Origin: Haplodiscus bocki
Taxonomy: Eukaryota
DNA length: 64,000 nucleotides
Direction of reading: 5' to 3'
Assembly (NCBI GenBank): GCA_965655095.1
Contig: OZ296649.1
Location: forward strand, 103,974,001-104,038,000
The notes under the pieces are model-generated. The model worked only from the letters and a program-made list of their open reading frames with translations, did not search any database and had not been told where the DNA came from. Below, piece after piece: positions 47,370 to 64,000 of the stretch. A program made the position numbers and the translations under genes. The first letter of the stretch is position 1, and every line of letters starts with the position of its first letter.

Positions 47370-48217
47370 TGAATTTTCGTCATTGAAGTAAAACATCACA
47401 TCAAACGTCCGAGTGAAAGTTAAAATCCTAATGCCGCGTCGTCAACTTGTCCAAACTGGAATCAATTGAGCTTCATTGAAAAATTCTGAATGGCAGCGTT
47501 GAAATGGGACTTTTGGCAATTCAATGTTGCTATTACACAAACAGTTACAAAATTTTGCATCAGAAAGGTTCTTCAGTAGACGGTAAATGGAATTCAAGCG
47601 ATGTCTGACAATTTTGTCCCCGAAACACAACACTCACGTCAGACAATTTTGCAGTGTTGGTCAAAGTTCAGTGATGCTGCCGCTAGTTCTTTGTTTCAGT
47701 TGTGCAGCTCGGTGGATCTTGAACTGGACTTTGCCGTGGAAATAGATCTGGTGTGGATGAGGTGTGACTGGGTTCGGTGGATGACGTCAAGGGATCGCAG
47801 CGGGTGGTTGATAGGGAGCACAAGCGGGCTTTTTAGCCTAAAAAGATAGTTCTTCTCTGTGTTGCATGTCAGAATTTTTTCCGAACTTTCACAAGGTTAA
47901 ATTTTACTATTTCAGGTCTTGACAAAAGACATTGCCGCTGTTGGAGACAGCAGTTTATTGGCGAGCGGACAAGATTCTTGGATGCATGGATCACAATCCT
48001 CTCTGGTTAGTTGAGAGAGCCTTTTCAGTATTTCAATTGTTATTCTTCTGAGCTGTTGATTTTGAGATCAGCTCTCATCAATTTTAAAAACATTGTGAAC
48101 AAATATTTAAGTTAGTTATATTGATTTAAAGTTCAATATTTGACCTTAAATGTCAAGGTATTCGGGGTTTAATCTGAAGTTCATGTGTCCTCAACGAAGG
48201 TATTTTGTTTTAGTACA
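47370..48217 (-). repeat. 5' LTR
   Basis: Homologous to the 34131-34693 LTR; followed on the minus strand by TGGTGTTGG, a possible PBS. Inner boundary approximate. Confidence 0.72.
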
Positions 48218-48911
48218 TGACAAGGAGTTGCGATGACCGTTGATACCAGCAGCTTTTTCAATGGGGTTCCATTTCTGTTGGGCATATCTTTCAATAAAAA
48301 GTTCAATTTCAAAAGAACTTTCAATTCAGTGAGAAGTCATCTTTGAATGAGAATCTTTCAAAAAAACTTGAATGAATGCGAAATATAAAGCTCCTGAAAC
48401 TTGAGTAATTGACTCCTGATTAGTCGTGGAGATACTTTCCGCCGGCCGGCAAAAAACAGCGGTCGGAGAATAAATAGTCAAGAGCACCTATTGATAAAAC
48501 TCAACAAAAACCAAGATTTTTCTTCAAGATTTAAGTTTCAAGATTTGAGAAGGCATTTTCTAGTTTTTGTTCAATGCATCGTAAATTTTCAACGTCCACG
48601 CAATCATATTCTTCTCAAGTTTCCGAGAATATTTTGTTTCTCCTACTTTTGTCTGAAATTGTCATTTCGAAGTGTTTCGTGCTCATAGTCTACTACTAAT
48701 CATCAGCGTCTAGTCGCATCATTTAAAATCAGGACTGCACTATGATAATTGAAATGTTATGCTAGAGTTAATTTTTCTGGAACACAGACAAATTTGTCTA
48801 TTGGTTAGACTTTTCAAAAACATGCATCAAACATGCCAAACAAAGAGCGCCAAAAAATTGAGTAAATTAAAACAAATAGCGCTTCTAATTGCATAAAAGT
48901 ATCTCATACAC

Positions 48912-49478
48912 TCAAAGAAGGCTGCATGTCATTTTCTATCAGCTAGTTGTTCACTCCAATCCTTTGGAGGTAATTTTTCTATAATTGTACGGACCATGGT
49001 CTGAAAACGTTCTTCAACTTTCTCGAAAAGATCATGGTCACTTTCAATAAGAGGAATACTTCAGGCAGCAGCAAACTCTTCAACCTCACTCAGTGTCACA
49101 CCTCCCGTCTTAGTATAATCGCAAAACCCACCGATCGCATTGGGAGGCCCCGATTTTTCAATTCCTGCAACCAATCATCTAACTTTTGGAGCATGTTGGG
49201 GTAGGCAGAATCGTAAACAACTACGAATCCATGAGTTCCACGGAAATAACTGGGCGGAATAGTTCTGAAACGTTCTCCACACATACGATGCCAAACTTGC
49301 AATATCACCAGCTTGGAATCCAGCGCCAAACGTCTCACTCGGAAATCAACCCCGATAGTCATGCGAGGAATGTTTCTTCGCACAAGGTGACGAAACTCCT
49401 CGTTTTACACATACAATGGTCTCAGATGACTAAAATTTTCAAAAGATGATCAAGTTTCCGTCCAGCGTCTGATTTCAT
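48912..49478 (-). pseudogene. Pseudogene copy of the divergent Rab1-like gene
   Basis: Very similar to 57042-57653 including the upstream flank, but with an in-frame stop (VI*DHC) and internal deletions. Confidence 0.88.
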
Positions 49479-51099
49479 CGTTGGTAGATACACACTACTG
49501 CAAATCGAAGTACATGTAGTTTAACGAACATTACGGATGCCGCTGCAGGAAATGATGCTGAATTGAAATGGTGGGTCCACGTATGTATCATTAAGCATCT
49601 CAAATTATGAGAAACTCAAGTTTAAAGCAGCTTAACTGATGAACGACTATAAGTTTGTTTGAAAAAAATCCTTAAGGTATTAAAACGCCAATTTAGTTGA
49701 AATCATGAACGCAAGAAAATTTCTGATAAAGTAAAAAATGGAACAAGACCCCGAATGACATCTTCAACTCCACTAAGCAAGAACTAATCATTCAGAAAAA
49801 TGTGAGCTGCGTATCGAAGGTGAAACAAGAGACGCAGCGGCACTGCGATATTTTCTGTCGACCAGAACTCAAGCATTATGTGCAAGTGCGAAGTTGTTAA
49901 TTAGAACTTACCTGTTATTAGAGGCATACATCTCATAAATGTATTTTAATAGAAGATTGAATTTTATTTCAGAGATATCGCAGAAAGCACTCAAAAATGA
50001 ATCAAGAGGCTGCCAACACAATTGTTTTTGATGTAAAGATGAGTTACTTTGTTCACTTGAAAAAAAGTTCTAAGAAGAAACCTACAGCAAATTTCGAAAA
50101 TTTGGTTGTGATAATTTGCTCAAAAACAAAATCGCAAACACTGGAGAACTTAGTGCTAGGGTCCTGGCAAGTACTCTTCACGGAAAGCGGAAAAAATCAA
50201 TCGAGAAGTTCGAAAAACAATCAATTGCCCTGTTGAGGCGCACAGAGAAGAGGGAAAAATCTGAACTAAACCCGCGGCTGTTCAGTCGCTGATTGTAGTC
50301 GTAAGGCCCTTGCAACTACTTTCGAGCTCTTATGGACGAGGAATAGACCTCGGAAAGTTACTCATTTCCGAAAAACACGAGAAAAGTTGCGAGTATTCGT
50401 GCGTGCTCAAAACTTGGGAAAGTTTTGATGCAAAAAAGTGAGGCGTATGGCAACGAAGTGTCTCGTCGAGACACTGTCGCTCAATTGGAACAACTCTCGA
50501 ATTAGAAAATGCGAAAAAAATATTTTGAGCAGCAGACATTATCAGAAAAAAAAACAGAAACAGATCCATTTCTCGACGGTTTGCCAGGAAATCAATTGTC
50601 AGAAGATTTGGAAGGTTACCAAAATTCATTAGAAAGCAACACGGAAATTCAAGTGTCTATTTGAGCCTCCGAAAAATAAGCTTCCAAGCCAATAGGAAAG
50701 GGAGGTGGATCTTCAAAGAGTGAAATCTTCGATACATTTTACGCAAATCATCAGCTTTTGATGTTTCATCGCACAAAAACCTGCTCATTCCTGATAGATG
50801 GTTGTCTAATTGTCACGTTGATTTGAAAGTTGCGTCAATTGGGCATTGGATCCGCATAATACAACTGTCACGAGCGAAAACGTTGTCGAAACTAGACCAT
50901 GTTGGGATCGTTCACAAAAAAAACCAATCAACAACGTTCAAAATCCAGCACAAAATAAGCATAGACTTATTATTTTGCGCCATATTAAAAATATGGAAGC
51001 AAAATCTTCCTCTCAAATGCGCTGACGTTTTTTTCACCCGATGTTTGCCAATTGCGTTCACGCCAACATCGGCAATTTTGTTCACGTCTGAACTCGAAA

Positions 51100-51475
51100 T
51101 TATTTTTTCACCAAATTGTAGCAAATTTGCCGTAGAATGCGACTGGAATAGAAAGAATTCTCAAAACGTTCAAAATTTGGGGTTTTTTGGAGAAGTAGAT
51201 AGGTTTTTCGAAAAATAATCTTGAAACTTTTTCAAAATCGCTACATGTGGCAAATTTTTTCTAGAATGCGTCTCAAATGTTATTTTTTCTTGAAAATGTC
51301 TTTCCATCTTAGTTTTGAAGTTTTTTTGGCGAAAATCAAAAAAATTAAAGTTGGAAAAGTTAGAAAATCTGATGAACAGATTATTTCAAACAAAAACGCT
51401 TTCATCCTTCTAAAAGGCATCTTTAACAATGTTGGAGGGCGCAAAATATCCCGGAGGTAACCGGGCGTCTTGTTT
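51100..51475 (+). mobile_element. Fragment of the same HINE-like repeat family as the 40200-40445 end
   Basis: Shared TTGGAAAAGTTAGAAAA block and CCCGG...CCGGG hairpin followed by a CTTGTT end. Confidence 0.55.
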
Positions 51476-52559
51476 GAATTCTAGTTGAAAGAACAATGCA
51501 GGAAAAAAACGAAGTGAATTATAAATTTGGAGTTATGAAGAGTCGAATAGGATCGAGTATTCGAAAAACATCTCAATTTCAAAGTCAGGTTCGCAGAAAG
51601 ATTATCGAGAACATCTTCGATAGCAACATAGATTCATTGCTTTGTAGAAAAGGACTTCCCTGGTACTTTTGAGAATAATTTCGGTTTTTTAAAGGCCTGA
51701 GTGCCAAAACATAGGTCTTCCAACATGACAAACTACCGATAAAACAGACAAAACTAGCATGATTCCAATGTTTATCAGCAAAAAAAACTATCGAAAACTT
51801 TTTCGGAAAGCCACCACAAATCAATCGGTATTTCAAAATCTCCTTGTTGCTTGAACGTTATAATCAGGTGATCTGAGGTATCTATGAAAATGCAAGATTT
51901 TCAATGTGACAAAGTTGAACATACGACAAAGTGACCGCCAACAAAATTAATGTTATATATACAAGTCCATTATTTTACTGTATATGCCAAAATAACGTAA
52001 TTCAGAAGCCTGTAGGCAAAAAACAAGGACTGAGTATATGACTGGGTATCAACAAACTAGACAAATATTTCTACCTTCATAAGTTTTAAAATTTATGAAT
52101 CCTGCTAGAAATGATTTTCAAAACTAGGAAGTTCCAAAAAAACGATTTTGATTGCCCAGAAGAACCTTTTGAGTAAAGACATTTTTAGGAAAATTCTTTT
52201 GGTCGATTTTTTCGTATTCAGTGCTAAAAATTTAAGCTAGTGTCCGAAACTTTTCGAAGCCATTGCAATTTGTTTCCACAAAATAGCAATCACAAAAAAC
52301 TAGTTCAGAGGGCTACCGTGACTACTCTGAATAAAAAACGTATGGCCAAGAAAATTGAACGACAGTCCACGCGCGCACTCAGCTACAGGTCAAGCCGAAT
52401 TTGCAAATCAGCAGCGAAAGAAGTTCACACGCTTTATTTCGTAATTTCATTGACCGAAAATAAAAACAAATCGAAAGCTTTCCGAAAGTCAGCCGCTCTC
52501 CAACAACTTGACCGACTAAGCTGGGCCATAAAACAACTCGCATTTGATTTGGTACCGCA

Positions 52560-53540
52560 TGATAAAGTAAATTGATAATTCCAAAATGTTAGAGACAGAC
52601 AGAGATAACACTGTATTATTGTATAGGGATAGCTGACACTAAATATACAAGTGAGAATGATTTATGCATCTAGCATAAATGATTTTACCAATGTAATATA
52701 AAGGCATTGGGTTATTTGAAGCGGAAATCCGGCAAAGTATTGCTAATTGTACAGGGACTGCGTTACACTCACTTAAAAGGAAACTTTTCAGTCTACTTTT
52801 GAATACCTGAAGACTTACACTTGTATCTCGCATGCTTACGGGCAGCGAGTTCAACTTCAAGGAAATATGGTCAACTTCAAGGAAATATGGTGAAAGAAAG
52901 ATTTGGAGGATCATGAAACAGAGGTATCTTGCCCAAAAGAATTATTTGATTCGAACGGTTGTTCAATCGGAAATTTGCCGTGGGTAGGTTTATTCTGTCC
53001 CCAAATGCTTTTTTTCTTTTGTTGATATACTGGAAAAATAGGTCAATGACTTCATCTCAATAAGTTGCCGAATGCCAAGTACACTTTTCTATATTCTCAA
53101 ATCAAATGAACCCCTAATACTGGAACGAAAATTACCAGACTTTAAAGCCCAATTCATCTGTTTCTCTAATGATAGTAATAACGGTGAGGAAATTCGCAGC
53201 AGAAATAAAGCAGAATTTTCGAAGTCACTCAAAACAAGAGCGTCGAAAAGCATAAGAACTGTTGTCGGAAATTTATGTTGTATAGTTTTGATGATTTTGA
53301 TACCCACAGCCATTTTCTTCAACTCCTTTTTGGTTTCAGTCTGGAAATCTAGGTGCTTATCAATTGTTATACCTAGGTACTTACACTGATTCGACTTTTC
53401 AATTTTGAATGAGCCAACTACTGTTTCTGAGTCCTGCAGACGTTTATCACTTTTACAAGAAAAGGTGATGAATTCTGTTTTACTGCCGCTCAAATTCAAA
53501 CGATTAAGAGAGAAGTAATTTTCCAGTTTTACAATTATCC
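52560..53540 (-). mobile_element. 3' fragment of a CR1/L2-type LINE (RT thumb and C-terminus)
   Basis: LNLSGSKTEFITF...KYLGITIDKHLDF; LNSLPVSMRD...FKSRLKSFLL. Confidence 0.82.
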
Positions 53541-54489
53541 AGTTAGAAAAAGATGACAGTCGTGAAAATAGATTTAATCACGTGAAAAAAAGGAATACTA
53601 GTCAACAGCGGGTTAATACATCAAAAACATTTCATATAGATATTTCTCACATTTCGATCATTAGAAATATGTGAATTATCGGAAGGGCATAGCCATGTTC
53701 CGATTTGAAATCATCACGAGGTTCAAAAAACAGAAAACGAAAACTGAAAAATCCGAAAAAAAAATCAGTTTTAAGTTCAATGAACATAAAAGAAAACATC
53801 ATAGACTCAGAGCGAGGTGCCGCTGCCGAACTCATTCCCACGATTCAAGGGCTGGCAGCGACCTAGTGATTTGAATTGCCTCCAGCAAAGTAGAAGAGAC
53901 TGCTGCGCCGGTCAATCTAAGTTGTGTTCTCCATGATGCAGGAATGATCAACTTGAAAGCTGCGGAAACGATCTCCCAAGGGCACCGCTTTTCCACAGTC
54001 CTCAGTCAAACGGTTCACCAAGTGCCGCCGCGTTCAGCCATTATACTCGGCTTGAAACCAAGGACAAGTGGTTCAGTAAACCACCTTAGATTGTAATTTT
54101 GTAGAAATGGGTGCTTTTAAACCTGGAAGAACGAACTACTGGAAGTTTTATCGTTGTTTGAATTATTTGTAAACTTGTAATTTCTGGTTGTTAACATTTT
54201 GTAAACTTTGTTTCTTTGCTTCTTTTTTCTGGTTTCAAGTAAGGCTTTGAGAGGTTTCAAACTTTCGTGAAACAATTCTATGACGAAGTAATGAAAAATA
54301 AACGATGTACGGCACCACCAACGACAAATTTGTGGGGCATTTTGACGAAAAAATCAAATAAATAGTAATAGGCTTCTTCTTTCACCCACTCATATGCACC
54401 GGTGTACCAGTTCTCACTAATTTGAGATATGAAAATGAAATGGTGCATTCGGATTCTGTCTTTAGAAAGAACTTCAAATTGGAGTGGAG

Positions 54490-55080
54490 CTGACTCAAAA
54501 TTTAAGACGTCAGGTACAATGTTTGCTGTCACGCTCCCAAGGTGGACCTCTTGTCAACGCCCTCTACTTGAGTGAAGTATCCATCAGTGCTTACTATTTG
54601 AACATTAATCGTGGCCAATAGGAACAACTGGATCAGAATCAGATTGGACAGGTTAAATCAGTTTCATCTAATATGTCATTAGCCTCATGTAAGCAGCAGC
54701 AAGTTGTATCGTCTCACGAAGAAGTACTATCGTAAACAACGACGTGACATCCAACAATTCAAGAATCTCGTATAGTGTCAGTTCGACCAATTCGATCATC
54801 TGAGCTGCAATCTTTACTGCAATGAGTTTTGGATTCATCCACTTCCGCCAACAGTAGAGCCAAGAAGCATCCTAATTTGTCATACATTGGCCCAATATTG
54901 CACAATAGATCTTAACGGAAAGCCAGGCTTATGTACTTTGGTGAGGCAGTAGATTTTTACCAGAATACCTCCAAAGGAACTCAACTGGTTGCAACGCTTT
55001 TCAAAAAACTCAAATTTTTTCAAAAGTGTCTGTTAATCTGAGTTCACGCGGTCTTCTTAAGCCAGCAATGTGTCACGTGA
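54490..55080 (-). mobile_element. Penelope-like element reverse transcriptase fragment
   Basis: KIYCLTKVHKPGFPLRSIV and LLDVTSLFTIVL, matching the YGLPKxHK..PLRPIV and SLDVxSLFTNVP motifs. Confidence 0.78.
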
Positions 55081-55909
55081 ATTTTTGTGAGAAAATGTTG
55101 ATATAATTTTATGCGTAAATTTTGACTGCTGATTTAACTCAACATGATAAAACATAATTTGGCAAAATGGAAACGAAACGTTTAGTTCCATTTACACTGA
55201 TGCAAGTAAAGGAAAAAGACAGCCGTCAAGCACTGGCATATTTTCGCACAATGGATAACTGAATCGATAGGTTTGGCAGTAATTATTCGCTGAAATGGGC
55301 TAGAGGTTATGCCTCTAAATTGCAAAAACTATGCTTGGCGGTTCGAATCTCGAGCTCATTTCTTTTACTAGCAAAATTGGCAAAACATGTCTGAAAGGAA
55401 AACGCCCATCGAATTATTGTTCTTTCACATTTAAAATATGGCACGAAAAATATAGTAAAAACTGCTGAACAGGGGAGTCAAATTGAGCCACTACACGATG
55501 AGGAAATTCATTGGAACATTGAAATGAGTCGACAATTTCGTCAGCCATTTATATTGCCACTTTCTGAAAAAACGATACGCCAAAATACATTTGACTGTAT
55601 TAAAACTTTGACAGAAACTTAAAGCACTCCTAACAAATTTCTGGCCGGCAATTGGTTATGTGCATCCAAGAGCAATGAAACTAGGTTCCGATGCTTAAAA
55701 ATATGCTTTGAACCTTGATTTCGAAAAACTCAAAACATTCCATTTTTCACAGAAAAAAAGTAATCATTATCCTTCAAAAATACAGAAACATCGTCTATTG
55801 TAGAAAAAATATATAATCAGAGTCAATGAAAGTGATCGACAGCGCTGCGATATTTACCGTCGACGGTGGGTCAGAAATGGCCCGAAAATGAGCGTGCTGA
55901 TATGAAAGA

Positions 55910-56460
55910 AAAATAAGCACCCTGGGGTACGAGGAGGCCCGCTCTTAGCACAGTAAGTACATTTTAGTCAAAAACTGGTATTCTCAAAACTGATTTTCAG
56001 AGGAACATTTGGGAGAATTTTTTTCCGGACTTTGACAGAATCATTTTTGGACTTGGATTGGGCTATTTTTTTCCGGCAAAATGTCAATATTGCATTGTGT
56101 CCAGGGGAACGTTTTGGGAAAAAATTTTTCATTAACTTAGATTTTTTCCGGGACTTTGATAAAAAAATTTTTCAGACTTTGTGCGAAAAGTTTTCAGAAG
56201 GGTTGTCAAAACTGCACACCGCGTGTCTAGGGGAAATATGTAGAAAATTTTTTGAAGAACAATTTTCAAATTTATAAATTTCATCGGACTTGAGCGAAAA
56301 ATTTTAGACAGGGTTGCCAAAACTGCATTCTACCTGTCCAGGCGAACATTTAGGTAAAAACTTTTAGAAAAATTATAATTTTATCAAAAAAATTTCGAGA
56401 CTTTTAGCAAAAAACAAACGATCATTTTTATCCGAAATTGGCAAATTTCCGGAGAAAAAA
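55910..56460 (+). repeat. Repeat with degenerate internal ~120-bp units
   Basis: Recurrent TTTTCCGGACTTTG and AAAACTGCA...GTCCAGG.GAACATTT blocks. Confidence 0.6.
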
Positions 56461-57041
56461 AAGGTCTACATACTGAGAGAATAATGTTCCTTTCGACGGA
56501 AAATAATAAGAACAAAGTTTATTCAATCACCTAAGAGAAACCCTCCAAAAAACCTGATAAATTTGTATGTTTGGCGGAGAATAATAAGGAAGTTTTTTTC
56601 TATCGCCGAAGAGAAACCCTAAGAGAAAAATCTGACAAACTTGTATTTTTCGCTCAGTATTAACTATTTTTAATCAAGTTGACAATTGTAATGGCAATAA
56701 AGATATCTTATAAGTCTGCAAAAGATCGAGGGGTGTATAATATAGATCCTGCACTTTAAACCATAATTTCAGGCAGCCAATTTTGGTTCTAGAGGATGTT
56801 GATGTCACTTTAAAATAACAATAGACAATGATTTTCGATCAAGGAACAATGGAATATCGACCAAAGGCCTTCGTTTTAACCAAGGACATACAAGTACCCA
56901 TAATCCATCGTTTAGTCTAAATGGTATGCACGGAAACAATTAGTCTCTACGCTATTTGAATCTGCAACTGATGAGAATATCAAAATAAAAATTTGATCAA
57001 ACTGCTGATAACAAAAATATATTGAAGGCCAGTTTGAACTA

Positions 57042-57653
57042 TCAGAGAAAGCTGCATGTGGTTTTCTTTCCACAAGTTGGCTGTTCAATCGAATCATTTG
57101 GAGGTAAATTTTGTATAATGGCACGGACCATGGTCTGAAAACTTTCTTCCACTTTCTCCAAACGATCATGGTCAAGTTCAATAAGAGGAATACTTCGAGC
57201 AGCAGCAAACTCTTCAACCTCACTCAGTGTCACACCTTCCGTCTTAGTATAATCGCAAAACCCACCGATGAACAATTTTTCAGTATTGAGAGGCCCCGAT
57301 TTTTCAATTTCCTGCAACCAATCATCTAACTTTTGGAGCGTTTTGGGGTCGGCAGAATCGTAAACAACTACGAATCCATGAGTTCCACGGAAATAACTGG
57401 GTAAAATAGTTCTGAAACGTTCTCCACCCGTAGGGTACCAGACTTGCACTTTCACTAGCTTGGAATCCAGCGCCAAACGTCTCACTCGGAAATCAATCCC
57501 GATAGTAATTAGTTGGTCATCCAAGGAATATGTTTCTTCGCACAAAGTGAAGTAACTCCGCGTTTTACAAATGCAATGGTCTCCTATGACTACAATTTTC
57601 AGAAGATGATCAGGTTCCCGTCCAGCGTCAGATTTCATCGTTGAATAATGCAC
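57042..57653 (-). CDS. Divergent Rab1-like protein, predicted pseudo-GTPase, intronless
   Basis: Colinear with Rab1; IGIDF, KVQVW, RFRTI, YFRG and VVYD retained; G1 GDHCICKT, G3 WYPTGGE, G4 GGFCD; C-terminal CSFL. Confidence 0.88.
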   Translation of the reverse strand: MHYSTMKSDAGREPDHLLKIVVIGDHCICKTRSYFTLCEETYSLDDQLITIGIDFRVRRLALDSKLVKVQVWYPTGGERFRTILPSYFRGTHGFVVVYDSADPKTLQKLDDWLQEIEKSGPLNTEKLFIGGFCDYTKTEGVTLSEVEEFAAARSIPLIELDHDRLEKVEESFQTMVRAIIQNLPPNDSIEQPTCGKKTTCSFL

Positions 57654-58980
57654 ACTATATCTTGTAGTTGAACGAATATTAATGAGCTTGAATTCAAATG
57701 GTTAGTCGACATGTATCATTAAAACATCTCAAATTATGAACAACTCAAGTTTACAGTAGCTAAACGGATGAACGGCTGTTGGTTTGTTTGACAAAAAACA
57801 TTCCTTTTGTCATTAAAATGGGAATCTAGTTAAATTCAAGAACGCATCAAAATTTCAATAAGACCAAAATATAGGAACCAGGCCTCAAAATGACTTGTTG
57901 AATTCCACTAAGGACCAATCAACTAAATAACATATCAATTGTGAAAGTTCCGTGTCGAAAGTGAAACAACCCAAAGACTTCCTCAAAGACAGAGCCGCCC
58001 TCCACACATTAAGCGACTAGATTAGGCAAGCAAACAATTCGCATTCGATTCAGTACCCCATGATTTAAAAATTTTGTAAAATTAATTTCCGCAAATTGAA
58101 AATCAGGAGTGTTTCTTCCAACCAATGAAACCACATATAACAAACATACCATTCAGCACCGAGTGAATCCATATAAAAACAGATGTCATGTAGACAAGTC
58201 TCCAAATTTCAACATTGGAAGTATTCTGACATAGTCAGCGCGAACACGTTTAACCAAAATTTTTCCAATATGAAAATGAAACGCTGGGTTCCATTTATAT
58301 TAATCTCGATAAAAAACAAGTTGTACTGATTATTATGAGTACAACTGAGCCAGGACCTATTGAAAAACTCATTCGCACGCACATTTGAATGACCTGAAAA
58401 TTTTCGACTCCCATTCAATTACCTCTTTTCGAAATGGAACCATATGGACCGCATTGATTCTTTGAATGGACAAGCTCCCCGAAAGTCTTGCTCGAAACTA
58501 AGACAAATCTTCAAATTTCCCTAACATTTGCCTAAGACTATGAATTGTGTCAGCAAAAACCCTTCCAAAAACACTCCAAATAAATTTCGGGCCGGTAATT
58601 TGTCACGCATGTCCAGCAAATAATGATACTTAGAAGCGATGCTAGGAAAATGCTTCGAAAAAATCCTATAACTAAAGCAACTCATTTATTGAAGCAAAAT
58701 TTTATACAAATCCTATAAAATTGCTGCTTATACAGAAGCATCGTTTATTATAGAAAAAATCGATAATCAGAATCCCTGAAATCGAGGAGGGACAATTTTA
58801 GCTTTGGAAAGCCAGAAAAAGTTATCATCAGGAACATCCAAGTTCCATTTTTAGTTTGAATGGCAAGCACTTCACTAAGCTATCTAAATCTGCAACTTGT
58901 AACATTTTCAAATTAAAAATTTTATCAAACTACTGATTACACAATAGAGTTTCTGATCCATTAGAAGTCCAGTTGAACAT

Positions 58981-59580
58981 TCAAAGAAAGCTACAAGTGG
59001 TTTTCTTTCCACAAGTTGGCTCTTCACTCGAATCATTTGGACGTAATTTCTTTATAATTGTACGGATCATGGTCTGAAAACTTTCGTCCACTTTTTCCAA
59101 AGTATCCTTGTTAAGTTCAACCAGAGGAATACTTCGAGCAGTAGCAAACTCTTCAACCTCACTCAGTGAGACACCTTTCGTCTTAGTATTATCGCAAAAC
59201 CCACCGATGAATAATTTTTCAGTATTGGGAGGCCCCGAACTCTCAATTTCTTGTATCCAATCATCCAAATTTTTGAGCGTATTGGGCTCAGCATAATCGA
59301 AAACAACTGCAAACCCATTAGCTCCACGGTATAAAAAGGGAGAAATATATCTAAAACGTTCTCCCCACATAGGATACCAGACTTTCACCTCCACCAGTTT
59401 GGAATCAAGCGTCAAACGTCTCCCTCGGAAATCAACACCAATAGAAGCTAGTTGATCATCAAATGAATAATTTTCTATTGTAAAGGTGTTAAAACTTCTG
59501 CTTCGACACCAGCAGCAATTGTCACCAAGGACAACAATTTTTAGAACATAATCGGGTTTCCGTTCAGCGTCAGCTTGCAT
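58981..59580 (-). CDS. Second divergent Rab1-like protein, intronless paralog
   Basis: Intact 199 aa paralog; G1 GDNCCWCRS, G3 WYPMWGE, G4 GGFCD; same CGKKTTCSFL tail. Confidence 0.88.
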   Translation of the reverse strand: MQADAERKPDYVLKIVVLGDNCCWCRSRSFNTFTIENYSFDDQLASIGVDFRGRRLTLDSKLVEVKVWYPMWGERFRYISPFLYRGANGFAVVFDYAEPNTLKNLDDWIQEIESSGPPNTEKLFIGGFCDNTKTKGVSLSEVEEFATARSIPLVELNKDTLEKVDESFQTMIRTIIKKLRPNDSSEEPTCGKKTTCSFL

Positions 59581-60299
59581 CGTTAGGCGATGTAGTTAAA
59601 CGAAGATTATAGGCGATTCTGTAAGTGATTGGGAAGTTGAATTAACAGCGATTGACCAAAGTATTTACCATTACAACATCTCAAAGAAGTCAAACAACTT
59701 CATATTACAGGACTGATCTTCAATGACGCTTGTTCAATGCGTGGGAGAAACGTTCTATTTGATGCAAAAATGTCAAGGCATTGAACTTATCAGAAACTAT
59801 GCCAGAAAAAAGACATGACAACAAGATTCAATATTTTGGATTGCCAGATCACACACCGAAAACCAATGAATTTATTATTTCCGCCCACATTTAATATTAG
59901 GAAAATCTTCAACGAAGGTCATCCTCTCATTGCTTTCATTTCTAACGTAAACTTCTCGTTGCATGATTCTGCAATGTTTTGCAATTGCAAGGTGGGAAAT
60001 TTGCAGCAGAATGCGAATGAAATGGTACTGTCATAGATGAAGAAGTATTCAGCCTGAAATGCTTTTCGTTGATCATTCTTTCATACTCTGGACACAGAGG
60101 CGAAGCGGAACTTTGCAACACATTCTGACTGGTTAGTTGAGATTACGGATCCCGAAAGAGATTTATCACTATGATTGGAGAAGTGATTGACACTTTCAAA
60201 AATACTATTCCAACTGTCAATCACCAGCTTGTTCGAAAAAAAATCACAGGGTCTCATTCGGAAAGTTGATATGCCAATCATGTCTTATTAAGTTACCGC

Positions 60300-62520
60300 C
60301 ATTAGGCTGCCCCATGTTCAAGAAGTTTGATCAGTGAACAAGGCAAAACAAAACAAATACCTGCCACACTATTTCGGGTTTTCAAATTTGATTGTAAATG
60401 ATGTCTTTTGAGGTTACGCTATTTGCTGCCCGATGTTTGAGAAGTTTGCACACTAAACAACGTGAAAATGAACAAGTACCTGCCCCAGTCTCATTCAAAA
60501 ATTGATGTTTTTTTCAGGTTAGGGCGTTTTGCTGGAAGTTTGCACATTAACAAGTACCTGTCAGAGAGACCGTATTTGACCGTTTAGACTAGACAACTCT
60601 CTGAGCCTAATTGCTGTGGTAAACTCATTGAATAGTTTACGATTATCAATGCCCTCTAATCACAAAAAGTACAACAACGTCTGCAAATGATGGTAACTGG
60701 CATGAAGTTGAATGCACTAGTCCAAGTCTGGATGGTGGCAGTTATATCGCGTGGACGTCGGTAGCTACCCTGAAAAATCCCGAAGAATAAACTATCCAGG
60801 CCATTTCTCAGTAGCTTGTGCCGCTGAAGCATTTAGAAGTTGGCAAGCCATGCTTTTGAAAAATATTCGAACAGCGAAGTGGACTGTCGCGAGCAGTACG
60901 GACGCCATGCAAAAATTAGGATTTCTTAGGTGCCCGAAGAGGAAGCCGTACACCTACATGAAGAGGTGGAAGTTGCAGCGAAATTTGAAAATACCATATC
61001 TACAGTGGACATCAGCAAGACTCACCGGTTGCCAGCTCGGAAAACTGCCCCCACGCCTCTCATAGCTATGTTTGTTCCGTATCATGGCTTAAAAAGCGCT
61101 GAAATTGACAGATGGTTCGAAAGAGCTCAATATCTTTGAGAAAGATGAGATTTCGCCCTTGCGAGAGAAAATATTGCGAGCTAATGAAGGCAAACCTGGT
61201 ATTGAAGGAATAATATCGGACAATGGCAAAACATCATTCTTGACTAATAGTGGAAAGTTGATTGTTGACAACTTTTCTAAGTAACAAAAACGGGATCCTC
61301 TGCTAATCTCTACTGCTTGTGATAATATAAACGGGACTTTTGAATTTCCCTTCAAAAAATCAAAATGAAATACGTGACAATGGTAAAAAATATCAATGAA
61401 AACAACACCTGGCTTCTACATTCAGCCGTTAAACAGAAATTTTGTAGACTTAAGTTAGCTTGGTACTACATTTTGCAACGTGCGCTCTATTATATGTCTC
61501 AGCGAAACTTGGTTAAGGGATGCCACTCCACTGGAAATGTGACGTATCTCTAATCACAATAAAGTAGTATCCTTCTCTAGTGCCTCGCGCAACGACGGAG
61601 TTGCATTTTACGTTCGTAAGGGGAGCTCTCAATCAGTTTCTTTTGTTTTAAAAACCGACTATATACCTTTAAAAACTAGTTAAAAGGACGAAAGAGCTTG
61701 TATGTCAAAACAACTCAAGTGGAACGACTTACGAGTTCCCCTTTTATGGTGACAGACTGTCTGGGAAAATTTTTCATGCGGATTAACATCGCCAGACAGC
61801 GTGCCTGAGAAAATCAATCAAGCGGAGCCGAGTCCCCTGATAAGGCGACAGGTTGTCTGGAGAAATTAGTTTGAACAAATGACTGAAAAACAAAATAGTG
61901 TTAAAACTTGCATCAGGTCTCTGATAAAGAAAACACCTCCCATATATGGAAATCGTTGTAGCTTTGACCAAAAAAGGAAAGATTTTCCATATAAAGCAGG
62001 AATGAATCGGTTAAGCTTGTATAAAAGCAGCAACTTGCCATTCTGAAAATTGATTCTTCAAAAATCTTCCTCAACAGCAGCAACTCGCTTCTTCCAACTA
62101 CCAACGTACCCACCCACTGGTGAAATTTATCAACAATACCTTCCTGCGATCAGATTTCAGTGCTCAACCTTTGTCGAAATGGAATACCTTTTCCTATTAC
62201 AGGAAACGATGTCTGACTGTGGTTCCATGCAAATACGAAACAACAGAAAACATTAAAAGTTTTCTGGATCTACAACTGATCTTCCAAAGGTGAAACTAAT
62301 TTCCTGGAAGATATGGATACAGTAGTGCAAGAGTTGACTAAATTTGCAGACTTGTTTCATTCTACGTGACATGAACCTTGACATTCCAACAAATTCTCCA
62401 ATTACTAAGAACTATCTGAAAACCACAAAACAAAATGGTTTCTCCCTACTAACATTGAGTCCAAGGAGAGTTACGGAAAACTCATCGACCACAATTGATC
62501 ATGTGATACATTAAATGTGA
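60300..62520 (+). mobile_element. Decayed CR1/L2-type LINE 5' part (UTR repeats, ORF1, APE endonuclease), interrupted
   Basis: ACAA(A/G)TACCTG x3 in the putative UTR; ORF1-like DISKTHRL...PLIAMF; APE motifs NVRSI, CLSETW, DGVAFYV, RDMN, PRRV...TTIDHV. Confidence 0.72.
61670..62000 (+). promoter_or_regulatory. Orphan fragment of the Polinton divergent promoter inside the LINE endonuclease
   Basis: Colinear with ~280-630 (CAACTCAAGTGGAAC, GTGACAGACTGTCTG, CCCCTGATAAGG); perfect CArG boxes at 61740-61749, 61940-61949 and 61968-61977. Confidence 0.75.
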
Positions 62521-64000
62521 TCTCCACAAAAGCAAGATTCTCAAAAAATTGTCGCAGACTGAAGTGAACGGCCTCGAGTTCAGCTTGTCAGTAAATCTCG
62601 ACAACGATTAGTCAAGTGAGCGCTGGATGCGCCTCCATCCGATTGGAAGTCTTCGAAAACAAACGACACGAAACTTTCGACCTTTCAAACGGAAGTTGAG
62701 ATATTTCGAATTAGGCGTTCAAACAAGGCCATCCCGGCAACTCAACAGATAACGAAAAATCAAAAAGCACTGTTTGAACGCATTTCCATCAGTAGCTTCC
62801 AGGAAAGTCATTTCTGAAAAGAACAAATGGGAATTTTCTTCTTTCAATTTATTGATACATTCCCGCAAAATTACATATCATACTTTCCCACTGAATTCAA
62901 GCCAGCAATCAAGCAAGCGAGCGAAAACTTGCTTGCAGCTTGCAAATAACGTGCAATTTGACATTTGTTGCCAGTACAATGGAAGTACACACCGTATCTG
63001 TGTTCATGACACTTGGTATCGCAAATGTAACACAGAGCCAAAGCTTGGCTTCGCAAACATTAGCGACAAGACGCCGACTTCCAGTAGACAATCATTACAA
63101 AAATGCAAACTAAAGGCTTCATCAAAACTTGCGAACGTCAGCAAATCTTCAAAAATTAAATAGCTCTACATTGAAAACTAACAGCAATTACCCTGTCAGT
63201 GACAAAAACGTTCGATTTTGGTTGATCAACGGAACAAAACTGACATTCAAACTCCGAGAAAATATTACAGTATTTACGCAGCAAGTTGAAAATACTTCAA
63301 GCTTATAACACAAGTAGAAACAAGGTCAATTCTCAAACATCAGACAGCTCGCGGTAAAATGTCAAAATAGACCATCCCAGCAGCAGATCAGAAGCTTCAT
63401 GTAGCGAATAGTTCAATCAGCACTGGAGTGAACTAATCCGACCATTAGCAATTGCAAAAAATCTACACCTAATGAACGACGCAACTAAAAACATCGTTGA
63501 CTTTCAAACTAAAGTTCGGAAACTTTCGTCTAAAAAAGAAAAGTTGCTCCCATCTCTAAGAAGGATATCTGCGTGACAAGATTTCCAATACGCACTGGTC
63601 GGAGAGGCAATCTGACCATTAGCTTTCAAGAAATTTATTTCTGAAAAACTTTTCGTGTTTCGAATCTTCAATGAACTCCCGTGAAAATTGAAAAACAACT
63701 TCGCGCCGAATTCAAGCAAGAAAGTGATAAGTTCCGTGCAATTTGCTAGTAACCTACAAGTTGTTAATGGTCAACAAAAAGTAACCTCAAGTCTGTGCTA
63801 ATGACACTTGCTATCACAAAAGTGTCACGGCGGCAAAGATGTGCTTCACAAACACTCGCAATATTCAACTGGTTTCTAGTTCACAGTTATCAAAAGAAAT
63901 CCTGCGTAATGATTACAACAAAACTAGCAAAAGCTAGCAAATCAATACATCCAAGAAGTAACAAAAGATACCCTGTCAGTAAATAGGAATTTAAAATTAA

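Follow-up and report, generated by a model that had tools for sequence, protein, structure and literature searches.

PseudoGTPases have been recognised as a group only recently; few of them are understood mechanistically, and most are ancient domains within larger proteins. Members of class i, defined by a GTPase fold with degenerate G motifs and by the lack of nucleotide binding and hydrolysis (PMC12490416, PMC5593906, PMC13393502), include the N-terminal domain of AAGAB, the pG1 and pG2 domains of p190RhoGAP, and CENP-M (PMC12490416, PMC5593906). More lineage-specific proteins with several mutated G motifs have also been described, namely EhRabX10 of Entamoeba (PMC8514894) and ArlEM of Microsporidia (PMC13393502); in both cases pseudoGTPase status was deduced from sequence and models, and ArlEM is conserved across its lineage. 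In addition, the nucleotide-free laboratory mutants Rac1 G15A and RhoA G17A capture active exchange factors (PMC3608494). Here we describe a tandem family of Rab1-derived genes with degenerate nucleotide-binding motifs in a 64,000-nucleotide stretch of the Haplodiscus bocki genome (assembly GCA_965655095.1, contig OZ296649.1, positions 103,974,001 to 104,038,000 of the forward strand), which we call the window. We propose, with a probability of roughly 0.6, that two of these genes, paralogs A and B, are functional, selectively maintained and lineage-restricted Rab1-derived pseudo-GTPases that would be unable to cycle and probably do not bind nucleotide.

The window (37% G+C, free of N runs) contains three Rab-like copies, all on the minus strand. 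An initial annotation made from the sequence had reported two intact open reading frames (ORFs) and one pseudogene, and these were found at the following positions:

57042-57638, minus strand: paralog A, an intact single-exon Rab1-like ORF of 198 amino acids counted from a conserved ATG at 57638; motifs G1 GDHCICKT, G3 YPTGG, G4 GFCD, tail CSFL
58981-59580, minus strand: paralog B, an intact single-exon Rab1-like ORF of 199 amino acids; motifs G1 GDNCCWCRS (with a one-residue insertion), G3 YPMWG, G4 GFCD, tail CSFL
48912-49478, minus strand: copy C, a pseudogene nearest to A (89% nucleotide identity)

All of the motif strings quoted in that annotation, and the loss of SAK from G5, were present in these copies. 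The mechanically called ORF of A, running from a GTG to the stop codon, occupies 57042-57653 on the minus strand. At the protein level, A shares 69% identity with B. Copy C has an in-frame TGA at codon 19 (49424-49422) and has lost 14 bp and 12 bp in two deletions; this stop and both deletions are shared with the allelic contig. Lesions specific to the window allele are a second TGA and deletions of 2 bp and 4 bp. A tblastn search of the window found no Rab-like copy beyond A, B and C.

A word-based protein search returned only four close relatives (P0001-P0004), all from genome assemblies. Two of them, P0001 and P0003, come from L003, a contig allelic to the window, which has the same order B-A-C and 96.9% identity across 11.7 kb. 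P0002, referred to as D, is 76% identical to A and lies on another contig (L001) of the same assembly, while P0004, referred to as E, is 56-59% identical and comes from a different assembly (L002), where a frameshifted copy, F, is located 8 kb away. We also searched 1.84 billion representatives exhaustively with a profile and looked for degenerate motifs among the top 150 matches; divergent members ranking below the canonical Rab1s would fall outside these. Within the 150, only P0001 (the family representative), P0076 and P0098 had degenerate motifs, and the remainder were canonical Rabs. P0076 proved to be an allele of F, and P0098 a truncated call of another gene of the family, G, whose real ORF begins 30 codons upstream at MNSEAG; G is intact, with 199 amino acids, and a near-identical copy, H, carries a stop codon. 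These two copies share a contig with E and lie about 45 kb from it, and an allele of E, E2, was supplied by a second haplotype contig (L006). The search in related species that the initial annotation had called for yielded two intact genes (E and G) and two broken ones (F and H) in a second species, in conserved synteny. In that species the family spans about 55 kb of one contig; E and G are very divergent (number of nonsynonymous substitutions per site, dN, 0.49), and F and H are recent broken copies. The coordinates of the second-species family are:

L002: 10001-10603 and 18629-19149
L004: 9911-10510 and 17099-17700
L006: 863-1465 and 5424-5780

A literature search found no account of this family or of any animal Rab1-derived pseudoGTPase.

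Several lines of evidence identify Rab1 as the closest canonical relative of the family. Both A and B match the Pfam Ras family (PF00071; 2.5e-28 and 1.9e-21, respectively). In a sequence search of the PDB, the best solved relative was Rab1A (4.5e-39), with weaker matches to Ypt1, Rab8 (about 3e-29) and Rab35; the lead of Rab1A over Rab8 was about 30 bits. A BLASTP comparison of A with a vertebrate-type Rab1A domain gave 38% identity across 172 amino acids, in contrast to the strong conservation of canonical Rab1. All family members grouped together in a protein tree (one clade, support 100), with a very long stem next to the canonical Rab1-like sequences; this clade fell outside all of the sampled canonical sequences, so that it is not nested among the Rab1 rows. 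Structure prediction, also suggested in the initial annotation, was performed using AlphaFold2 (AF2). With an alignment of 117 sequences, the model showed the complete G-domain topology, with a predicted local distance difference test score (pLDDT) of 85, a predicted TM-score (pTM) of 0.82 and lower confidence at both switches (I and II); a model built from only the six family sequences was not informative (pLDDT 41). The best Foldseek matches of the 117-sequence model were all Rab1 (TM 0.77/0.89), with Rab8 and Rab11 also among the top. The family sequence is thus compatible with a G-domain fold in the predicted model, whereas the occupancy of the pocket lies outside what such a model shows.

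A further Rab1-like gene, P0090 (GCA_964058975.1), is apparently single-exon and encodes 206 amino acids with an intact P-loop and a CYYC tail; its only changes are Gln-to-Gly in G3 and Asn-to-Ser in G4. We considered P0090 as an evolutionary intermediate and rejected it, given that the tree places it among the canonical Rab1 rows and not beside the family; it is an unrelated gene.

To compare the nucleotide pocket with the RabF surface, we aligned the family to 110 canonical Rab domains and scored identities against the canonical consensus. Family members were identical to the consensus at 4-7 of the 21 positions in motifs G1-G5, at 14-20 of the 27 positions in RabF1-F5, and at 22-38 of the remaining 121 positions (18-31%). 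In A, RabF positions were retained significantly more often than the rest (19/27 versus 38/121; Fisher p = 3e-4), and the G motifs (7/21) did no better than this background (p = 1). The description given in the initial annotation, namely an effector face that is kept and a pocket that is rewritten, therefore holds quantitatively for A.

Next, we scored a residue as lost when its position is at least 90% conserved in canonical Rabs and changed in all five distinct intact members. The residues lost in this sense include G24 (the P-loop Gly preceding Lys, which is invariantly Cys in the family), D68, T69, Q72 (the catalytic Gln of G3, always Gly), K127 and the SAK triplet of G5, which is replaced by LDH or LNK in the window copies. 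Those kept in all five include D49, F50, W67, R76, I78, R84, G85, G88, V92 and D94, in the switch and interswitch region. Moreover, the Ser/Thr that serves as a Mg2+ ligand is replaced by Arg, Glu or Lys in E, F and G, and E has no G4 at all (AASFL). Other pocket residues vary even between alleles. Codon 22, in the P-loop, encodes Gly in E (L002 10061-10072) and Cys in E2 (L006 923-934), and codon 127 of A (window 57258-57260), in the G4 remnant, specifies Phe in the window allele and Cys in that of L003. This polymorphism suggests that the former pocket residues are under little constraint. Given that the G3 Asp, the G4 Lys, the G5 SAK and the catalytic Gln are gone from every member, that the Mg2+-ligand Ser/Thr is lost from E, F and G, and that pocket residues vary freely, canonical nucleotide binding and cycling appear unlikely.

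The same comparison does not support the idea that shared derived YP and GGFCD residues characterise the family. YP in G3 occurs in A, B and G only, with HR in D and C and HP in E. GGFCD varies between alleles, with GGCCD in the allelic contig; E does not have it, and in G it is changed to RGQCD. It also bears on a proposal that the former nucleotide pocket has become a Cys-based metal or redox sensor. The P-loops are indeed rich in Cys (C-x-C in A, D and G; CC-W-C in B), and the G4 remnant carries a Cys as well (GFCD, or GCCD in one allele). However, the Cys at position 24, which precedes the P-loop Lys or Arg, is the sole invariant Cys of the pocket; the others differ among paralogs and even between alleles, as in the G-I-C of E against the C-I-C of E2. 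E lacks the G4 Cys, and no set of three or four ligands is conserved across the family. The sensor proposal is weakened by these observations, and we regard it as very improbable.

We then examined whether the open frames are maintained by natural selection. The ratio of nonsynonymous to synonymous rates (omega), estimated by the Nei-Gojobori method (NG86), was 0.47 for A/B (bootstrap 95% confidence interval 0.31-0.73), 0.36 for A/D and 0.42 for B/D; the comparison of paralogs advocated in the initial annotation therefore gave a value that is not near 1. A GY+F3X4 codon model of eight sequences gave an omega of 0.214, and omega = 1 was rejected (log-likelihood, lnL, -2804.8 when free versus -2891.7 when fixed; 2ΔlnL = 174). 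Differences between alleles are in accordance with this. Synonymous and nonsynonymous differences numbered 3:4 in A, 3:2 in B and 8:3 between E and E2 (the last with dN 0.006 and a synonymous counterpart, dS, of 0.064). When these allele pairs were pooled, 14 of about 389 synonymous sites differed versus 9 of about 1397 nonsynonymous sites (Fisher p = 5e-5). Relative to the allelic contig, A and B have no indels, and C has 11 gap columns.

An alternative is that the copies are retro-pseudogenes or mobile-element cargo drifting neutrally, with frames that are open by chance. Their coding sequences are intronless, the neighbourhood is rich in transposable elements, and each cluster contains one dead copy. 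Furthermore, the total allele divergence of A and B (1.0%) is not significantly below that of intergenic DNA (1.66%, p = 0.11), which is a caveat to the case for selection. Nevertheless, this explanation is contradicted by the data and is extremely unlikely. The codon model and the excess of synonymous differences between alleles both oppose it, and neither a poly(A) tract nor a target-site duplication was seen around A or B. The true pseudogenes C, F and H have acquired stops or frameshifts despite lower divergence than that of the intact pairs; C is broken even though it resembles A more closely than B or D does. Thus the dead copies display the effects of neutrality, and A, B, D, E and G do not. 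Clearly, A and B are kept by natural selection and C is a dead copy.

Synteny leads to the same conclusion. The cluster has the same neighbours in the two assemblies: upstream of it, with matching orientation, come first a zgc:113208-like gene and then a MINDY-3/4 exon. The conserved neighbour gene has its best named matches, at about 70% identity, in fishes and oysters alike, which places the host only as an animal. The zgc:113208-like gene is 89% identical between the two assemblies; between the species, this neighbour shows a proportion of synonymous differences (pS) of 0.86, meaning that synonymous sites are saturated, and a dN of 0.075. The corresponding values for A versus E are a pS of 0.73 and a dN of 0.29, so that the family evolves at the protein level (dN) at about four times the rate of the neighbouring gene. 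Because synteny is conserved and the synonymous sites of the neighbour are saturated, the family predates a deep species split, and five distinct members have kept open frames across it. Synteny with host genes in two species also led us to reject mobile-element cargo as an origin. The claims of the initial annotation that the family is tandem, single-exon and Rab1-derived, with a degenerate pocket and frames held by selection, are supported by these results.

On the other hand, several observations weigh against reading A and B as selectively maintained pseudo-GTPases. Omega values of 0.36-0.47 among recent paralogs are high for a Rab, indicating constraint that is relaxed or mixed with diversifying change. 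A search for sequencing runs of this organism returned four, from one study and of unrecorded type, with no RNA run among them, and the database relatives are known solely from genome assemblies. The informative AF2 model leans on the canonical Rabs in its 117-sequence alignment, which biases it toward a canonical fold. G has a shortened switch II/RabF3 (YRPILP) and is the weakest member with respect to RabF; the retention of the face therefore varies among members. Finally, A and D retain the P-loop Lys25-Thr26, the switch-I Thr45, the G3 Gly71 and the G4 Asp129, which makes weak or non-canonical nucleotide binding possible.

This last point raises the possibility that guanine nucleotide is still bound by a non-canonical pocket, and that the proteins are constitutively GTP-bound, hydrolysis-dead Rabs, similar to atypical GTPases of the Rnd/RhoH type. 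The replacement of the catalytic Gln by Gly in all members is what a hydrolysis-dead form would have, and the fold is predicted to be intact. However, the Gly of the GK pair is Cys, and the G3 Asp, the G4 Lys and the entire G5 SAK are missing, in every member. The changes at the Mg2+ ligand in E, F and G and the absence of G4 from E argue in the same direction, as does the fact that supposedly essential residues vary between paralogs and even between alleles. We therefore consider non-canonical binding to be rather unlikely, and prefer the reading of A and B as pseudo-GTPases that probably lack bound nucleotide.

The C-terminal tails differ from those of Rab1 in a manner that may be relevant to function. 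All intact copies end in a C-a-a-L box (CSFL, CSFL, CSLL, CIML and CSFL), as do the pseudogene remnants, and Lys-Lys occurs just upstream of the box in A, B, D and E. The double-Cys of Rab1 (XXCC/GGCC), which serves Rab geranylgeranyltransferase (RabGGTase), is absent from the family tails. According to the established CaaX rules, this tail predicts geranylgeranylation by geranylgeranyltransferase I (GGTase-I), independent of the Rab escort protein (REP) and RabGGTase. REP and RabGGTase handle nucleotide-bound Rabs, and the swap from double-Cys to CaaL would free the protein from them, giving constitutive membrane anchoring.

Based on these features, the following mechanism may be envisaged. 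The residues for Mg2+, the phosphates and the guanine base have been lost, and the small-GTPase fold and the RabF surface are retained. The product would be a membrane-tethered, nucleotide-independent module that presents a fixed Rab1-like surface to at least one Rab1 partner, which would be bound through the retained switch/interswitch face without any switching. The most concrete candidate role is that of an exchange-factor trap or regulator, because the invariant Gly-to-Cys change matches the position of the nucleotide-free G15A/G17A mutants. By P-loop alignment, the same Gly before Lys is altered in both cases, as a natural and invariant change in the family. However, Rac1 G15A and RhoA G17A are engineered baits of the Rho family, and by analogy with them the trapping of exchange factors is a candidate role here. 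We put forward only tentatively, as a doubtful refinement, that the proteins could be naturally nucleotide-free, lipid-anchored mimics of Rab1, acting either as traps or regulators of the Rab1 exchange machinery (TRAPP-type guanine nucleotide exchange factors) or as decoys for pathogen factors that hijack Rab1.

The decoy version is more speculative and is suggested by the birth-and-death dynamics of the family. In this special case of the pseudo-GTPase reading, the proteins would be host decoys for pathogen effectors aimed at Rab1, evolving in an arms race. The tandem clusters do show birth-and-death turnover, with 3/8 copies being pseudogenes, and the dN of about four times that of the neighbouring gene is in the expected direction. 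The retained switch II and interswitch region is also where bacterial modifiers and binders of Rab1 engage it, as the Rab1 complexes at the head of the Foldseek results show. However, omega exceeded 1 in none of four alignment segments (0/4), although eight gene copies from two species are too few for site-level tests of positive selection, and nothing ties the family to immunity. A decoy role thus seems improbable, if less so than a Cys-based sensor.

We now turn to how the family compares with the described systems. It shares with Rab1 and Ypt1 the same G-domain fold, largely retained RabF1-F5 (including the hydrophobic F50 and W67) and a C-terminal prenylation Cys. It differs from them in the degeneration of G1, G3, G4 and G5, in the Gln-to-Gly change, in a CaaL box in place of the double-Cys, and in being single-exon and tandemly duplicated with pseudogenes, with a dN about four times that of a neighbouring gene. 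In its sequence and AF2 model, the family combines a GTPase fold with degenerate G motifs, and it would probably sit with the class i pseudoGTPases, which likewise have non-conserved G motifs and are used, or proposed to be used, as nucleotide-independent interaction modules. However, the known class i examples are ancient and widely conserved domains or subunits without lipid anchors, and AAGAB binds its partner via a non-switch interface. The present family, in contrast, is young, stand-alone, lineage-restricted and of small-GTPase size, with a CaaX box and a kept switch surface, and its lack of nucleotide binding is predicted from sequence. EhRabX10, an Entamoeba Rab, and ArlEM, an Arf-like protein of Microsporidia, have independent origins in unrelated organisms; the present family belongs to an animal and appears to descend from Rab1, and selection on it is documented explicitly at the codon level and accompanied by synteny. 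The family would be a new, independently evolved example of a pseudoGTPase.

The flanks of the genes indicate how the copies multiplied. The following blocks are shared:

57639-57969, minus strand: about 330 bp 5' of A, duplicated 5' of C (49479-49828) and partly 5' of D (L001)
56944-57041, minus strand: about 100 bp 3' of the A stop codon, common to B (58872-58980), with about 215 bp common to D

The upstream block is a candidate shared 5' untranslated region (UTR) or promoter of the duplication unit, and the downstream block a candidate shared 3' UTR. The coding sequence is a single ORF in every copy. Because the flanks were duplicated along with the genes, the later copies arose by DNA-level duplication, and the family evolves by local duplication and loss (birth and death) within a restricted lineage.

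Other features of the locus were also recorded. The spacers (window 49500-56900 and 59600-64000) contain only short ORFs without a Pfam match, and a 79-bp tandem duplication with 75% identity occurs in the spacer at 56497-56653. Between the window (48099-59814) and L003 (7822-19442), intergenic DNA differs by 1.66% substitutions and many indels; as a difference between haplotypes or individuals, this represents high heterozygosity, typical of some marine invertebrates. Read-contig 'variants' clustered at 57402-57449, and indels at 57307-57308, look cross-mapped from paralogous copies (C or D) and do not appear to be alleles of A. The zgc:113208-like gene is preceded on the allelic contig (L005), at a distance of about 7 kb, by the pol region (RVT_1, integrase) of a long terminal repeat (LTR) retroelement at 1-2950. 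The distance from MINDY-3/4 to the nearest Rab-like gene is about 56 kb (to B) in this species versus about 3 kb (to E) in the other, and this interval seems to have expanded a great deal.

The finding would be modest if the family turned out to be no more than a tissue-specific peculiarity of a single animal lineage that has been poorly sampled. Even so, its paralogs, alleles, orthologues and dead copies together constitute a natural experiment on how a switch is converted into a binder, on which surfaces need to be kept in the process, and on how targeting is re-engineered from double-Cys to CaaL. If the proposed mechanism is true, then the family would represent a genetically encoded 'dominant-negative' Rab that is kept by selection, and the change to CaaX prenylation would be an adaptation enabling a Rab that does not bind nucleotide to reach membranes. 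Should Rab1 regulators or pathogen effectors be sequestered in this way, it would mean that cells can evolve dominant-negative Rabs of their own.

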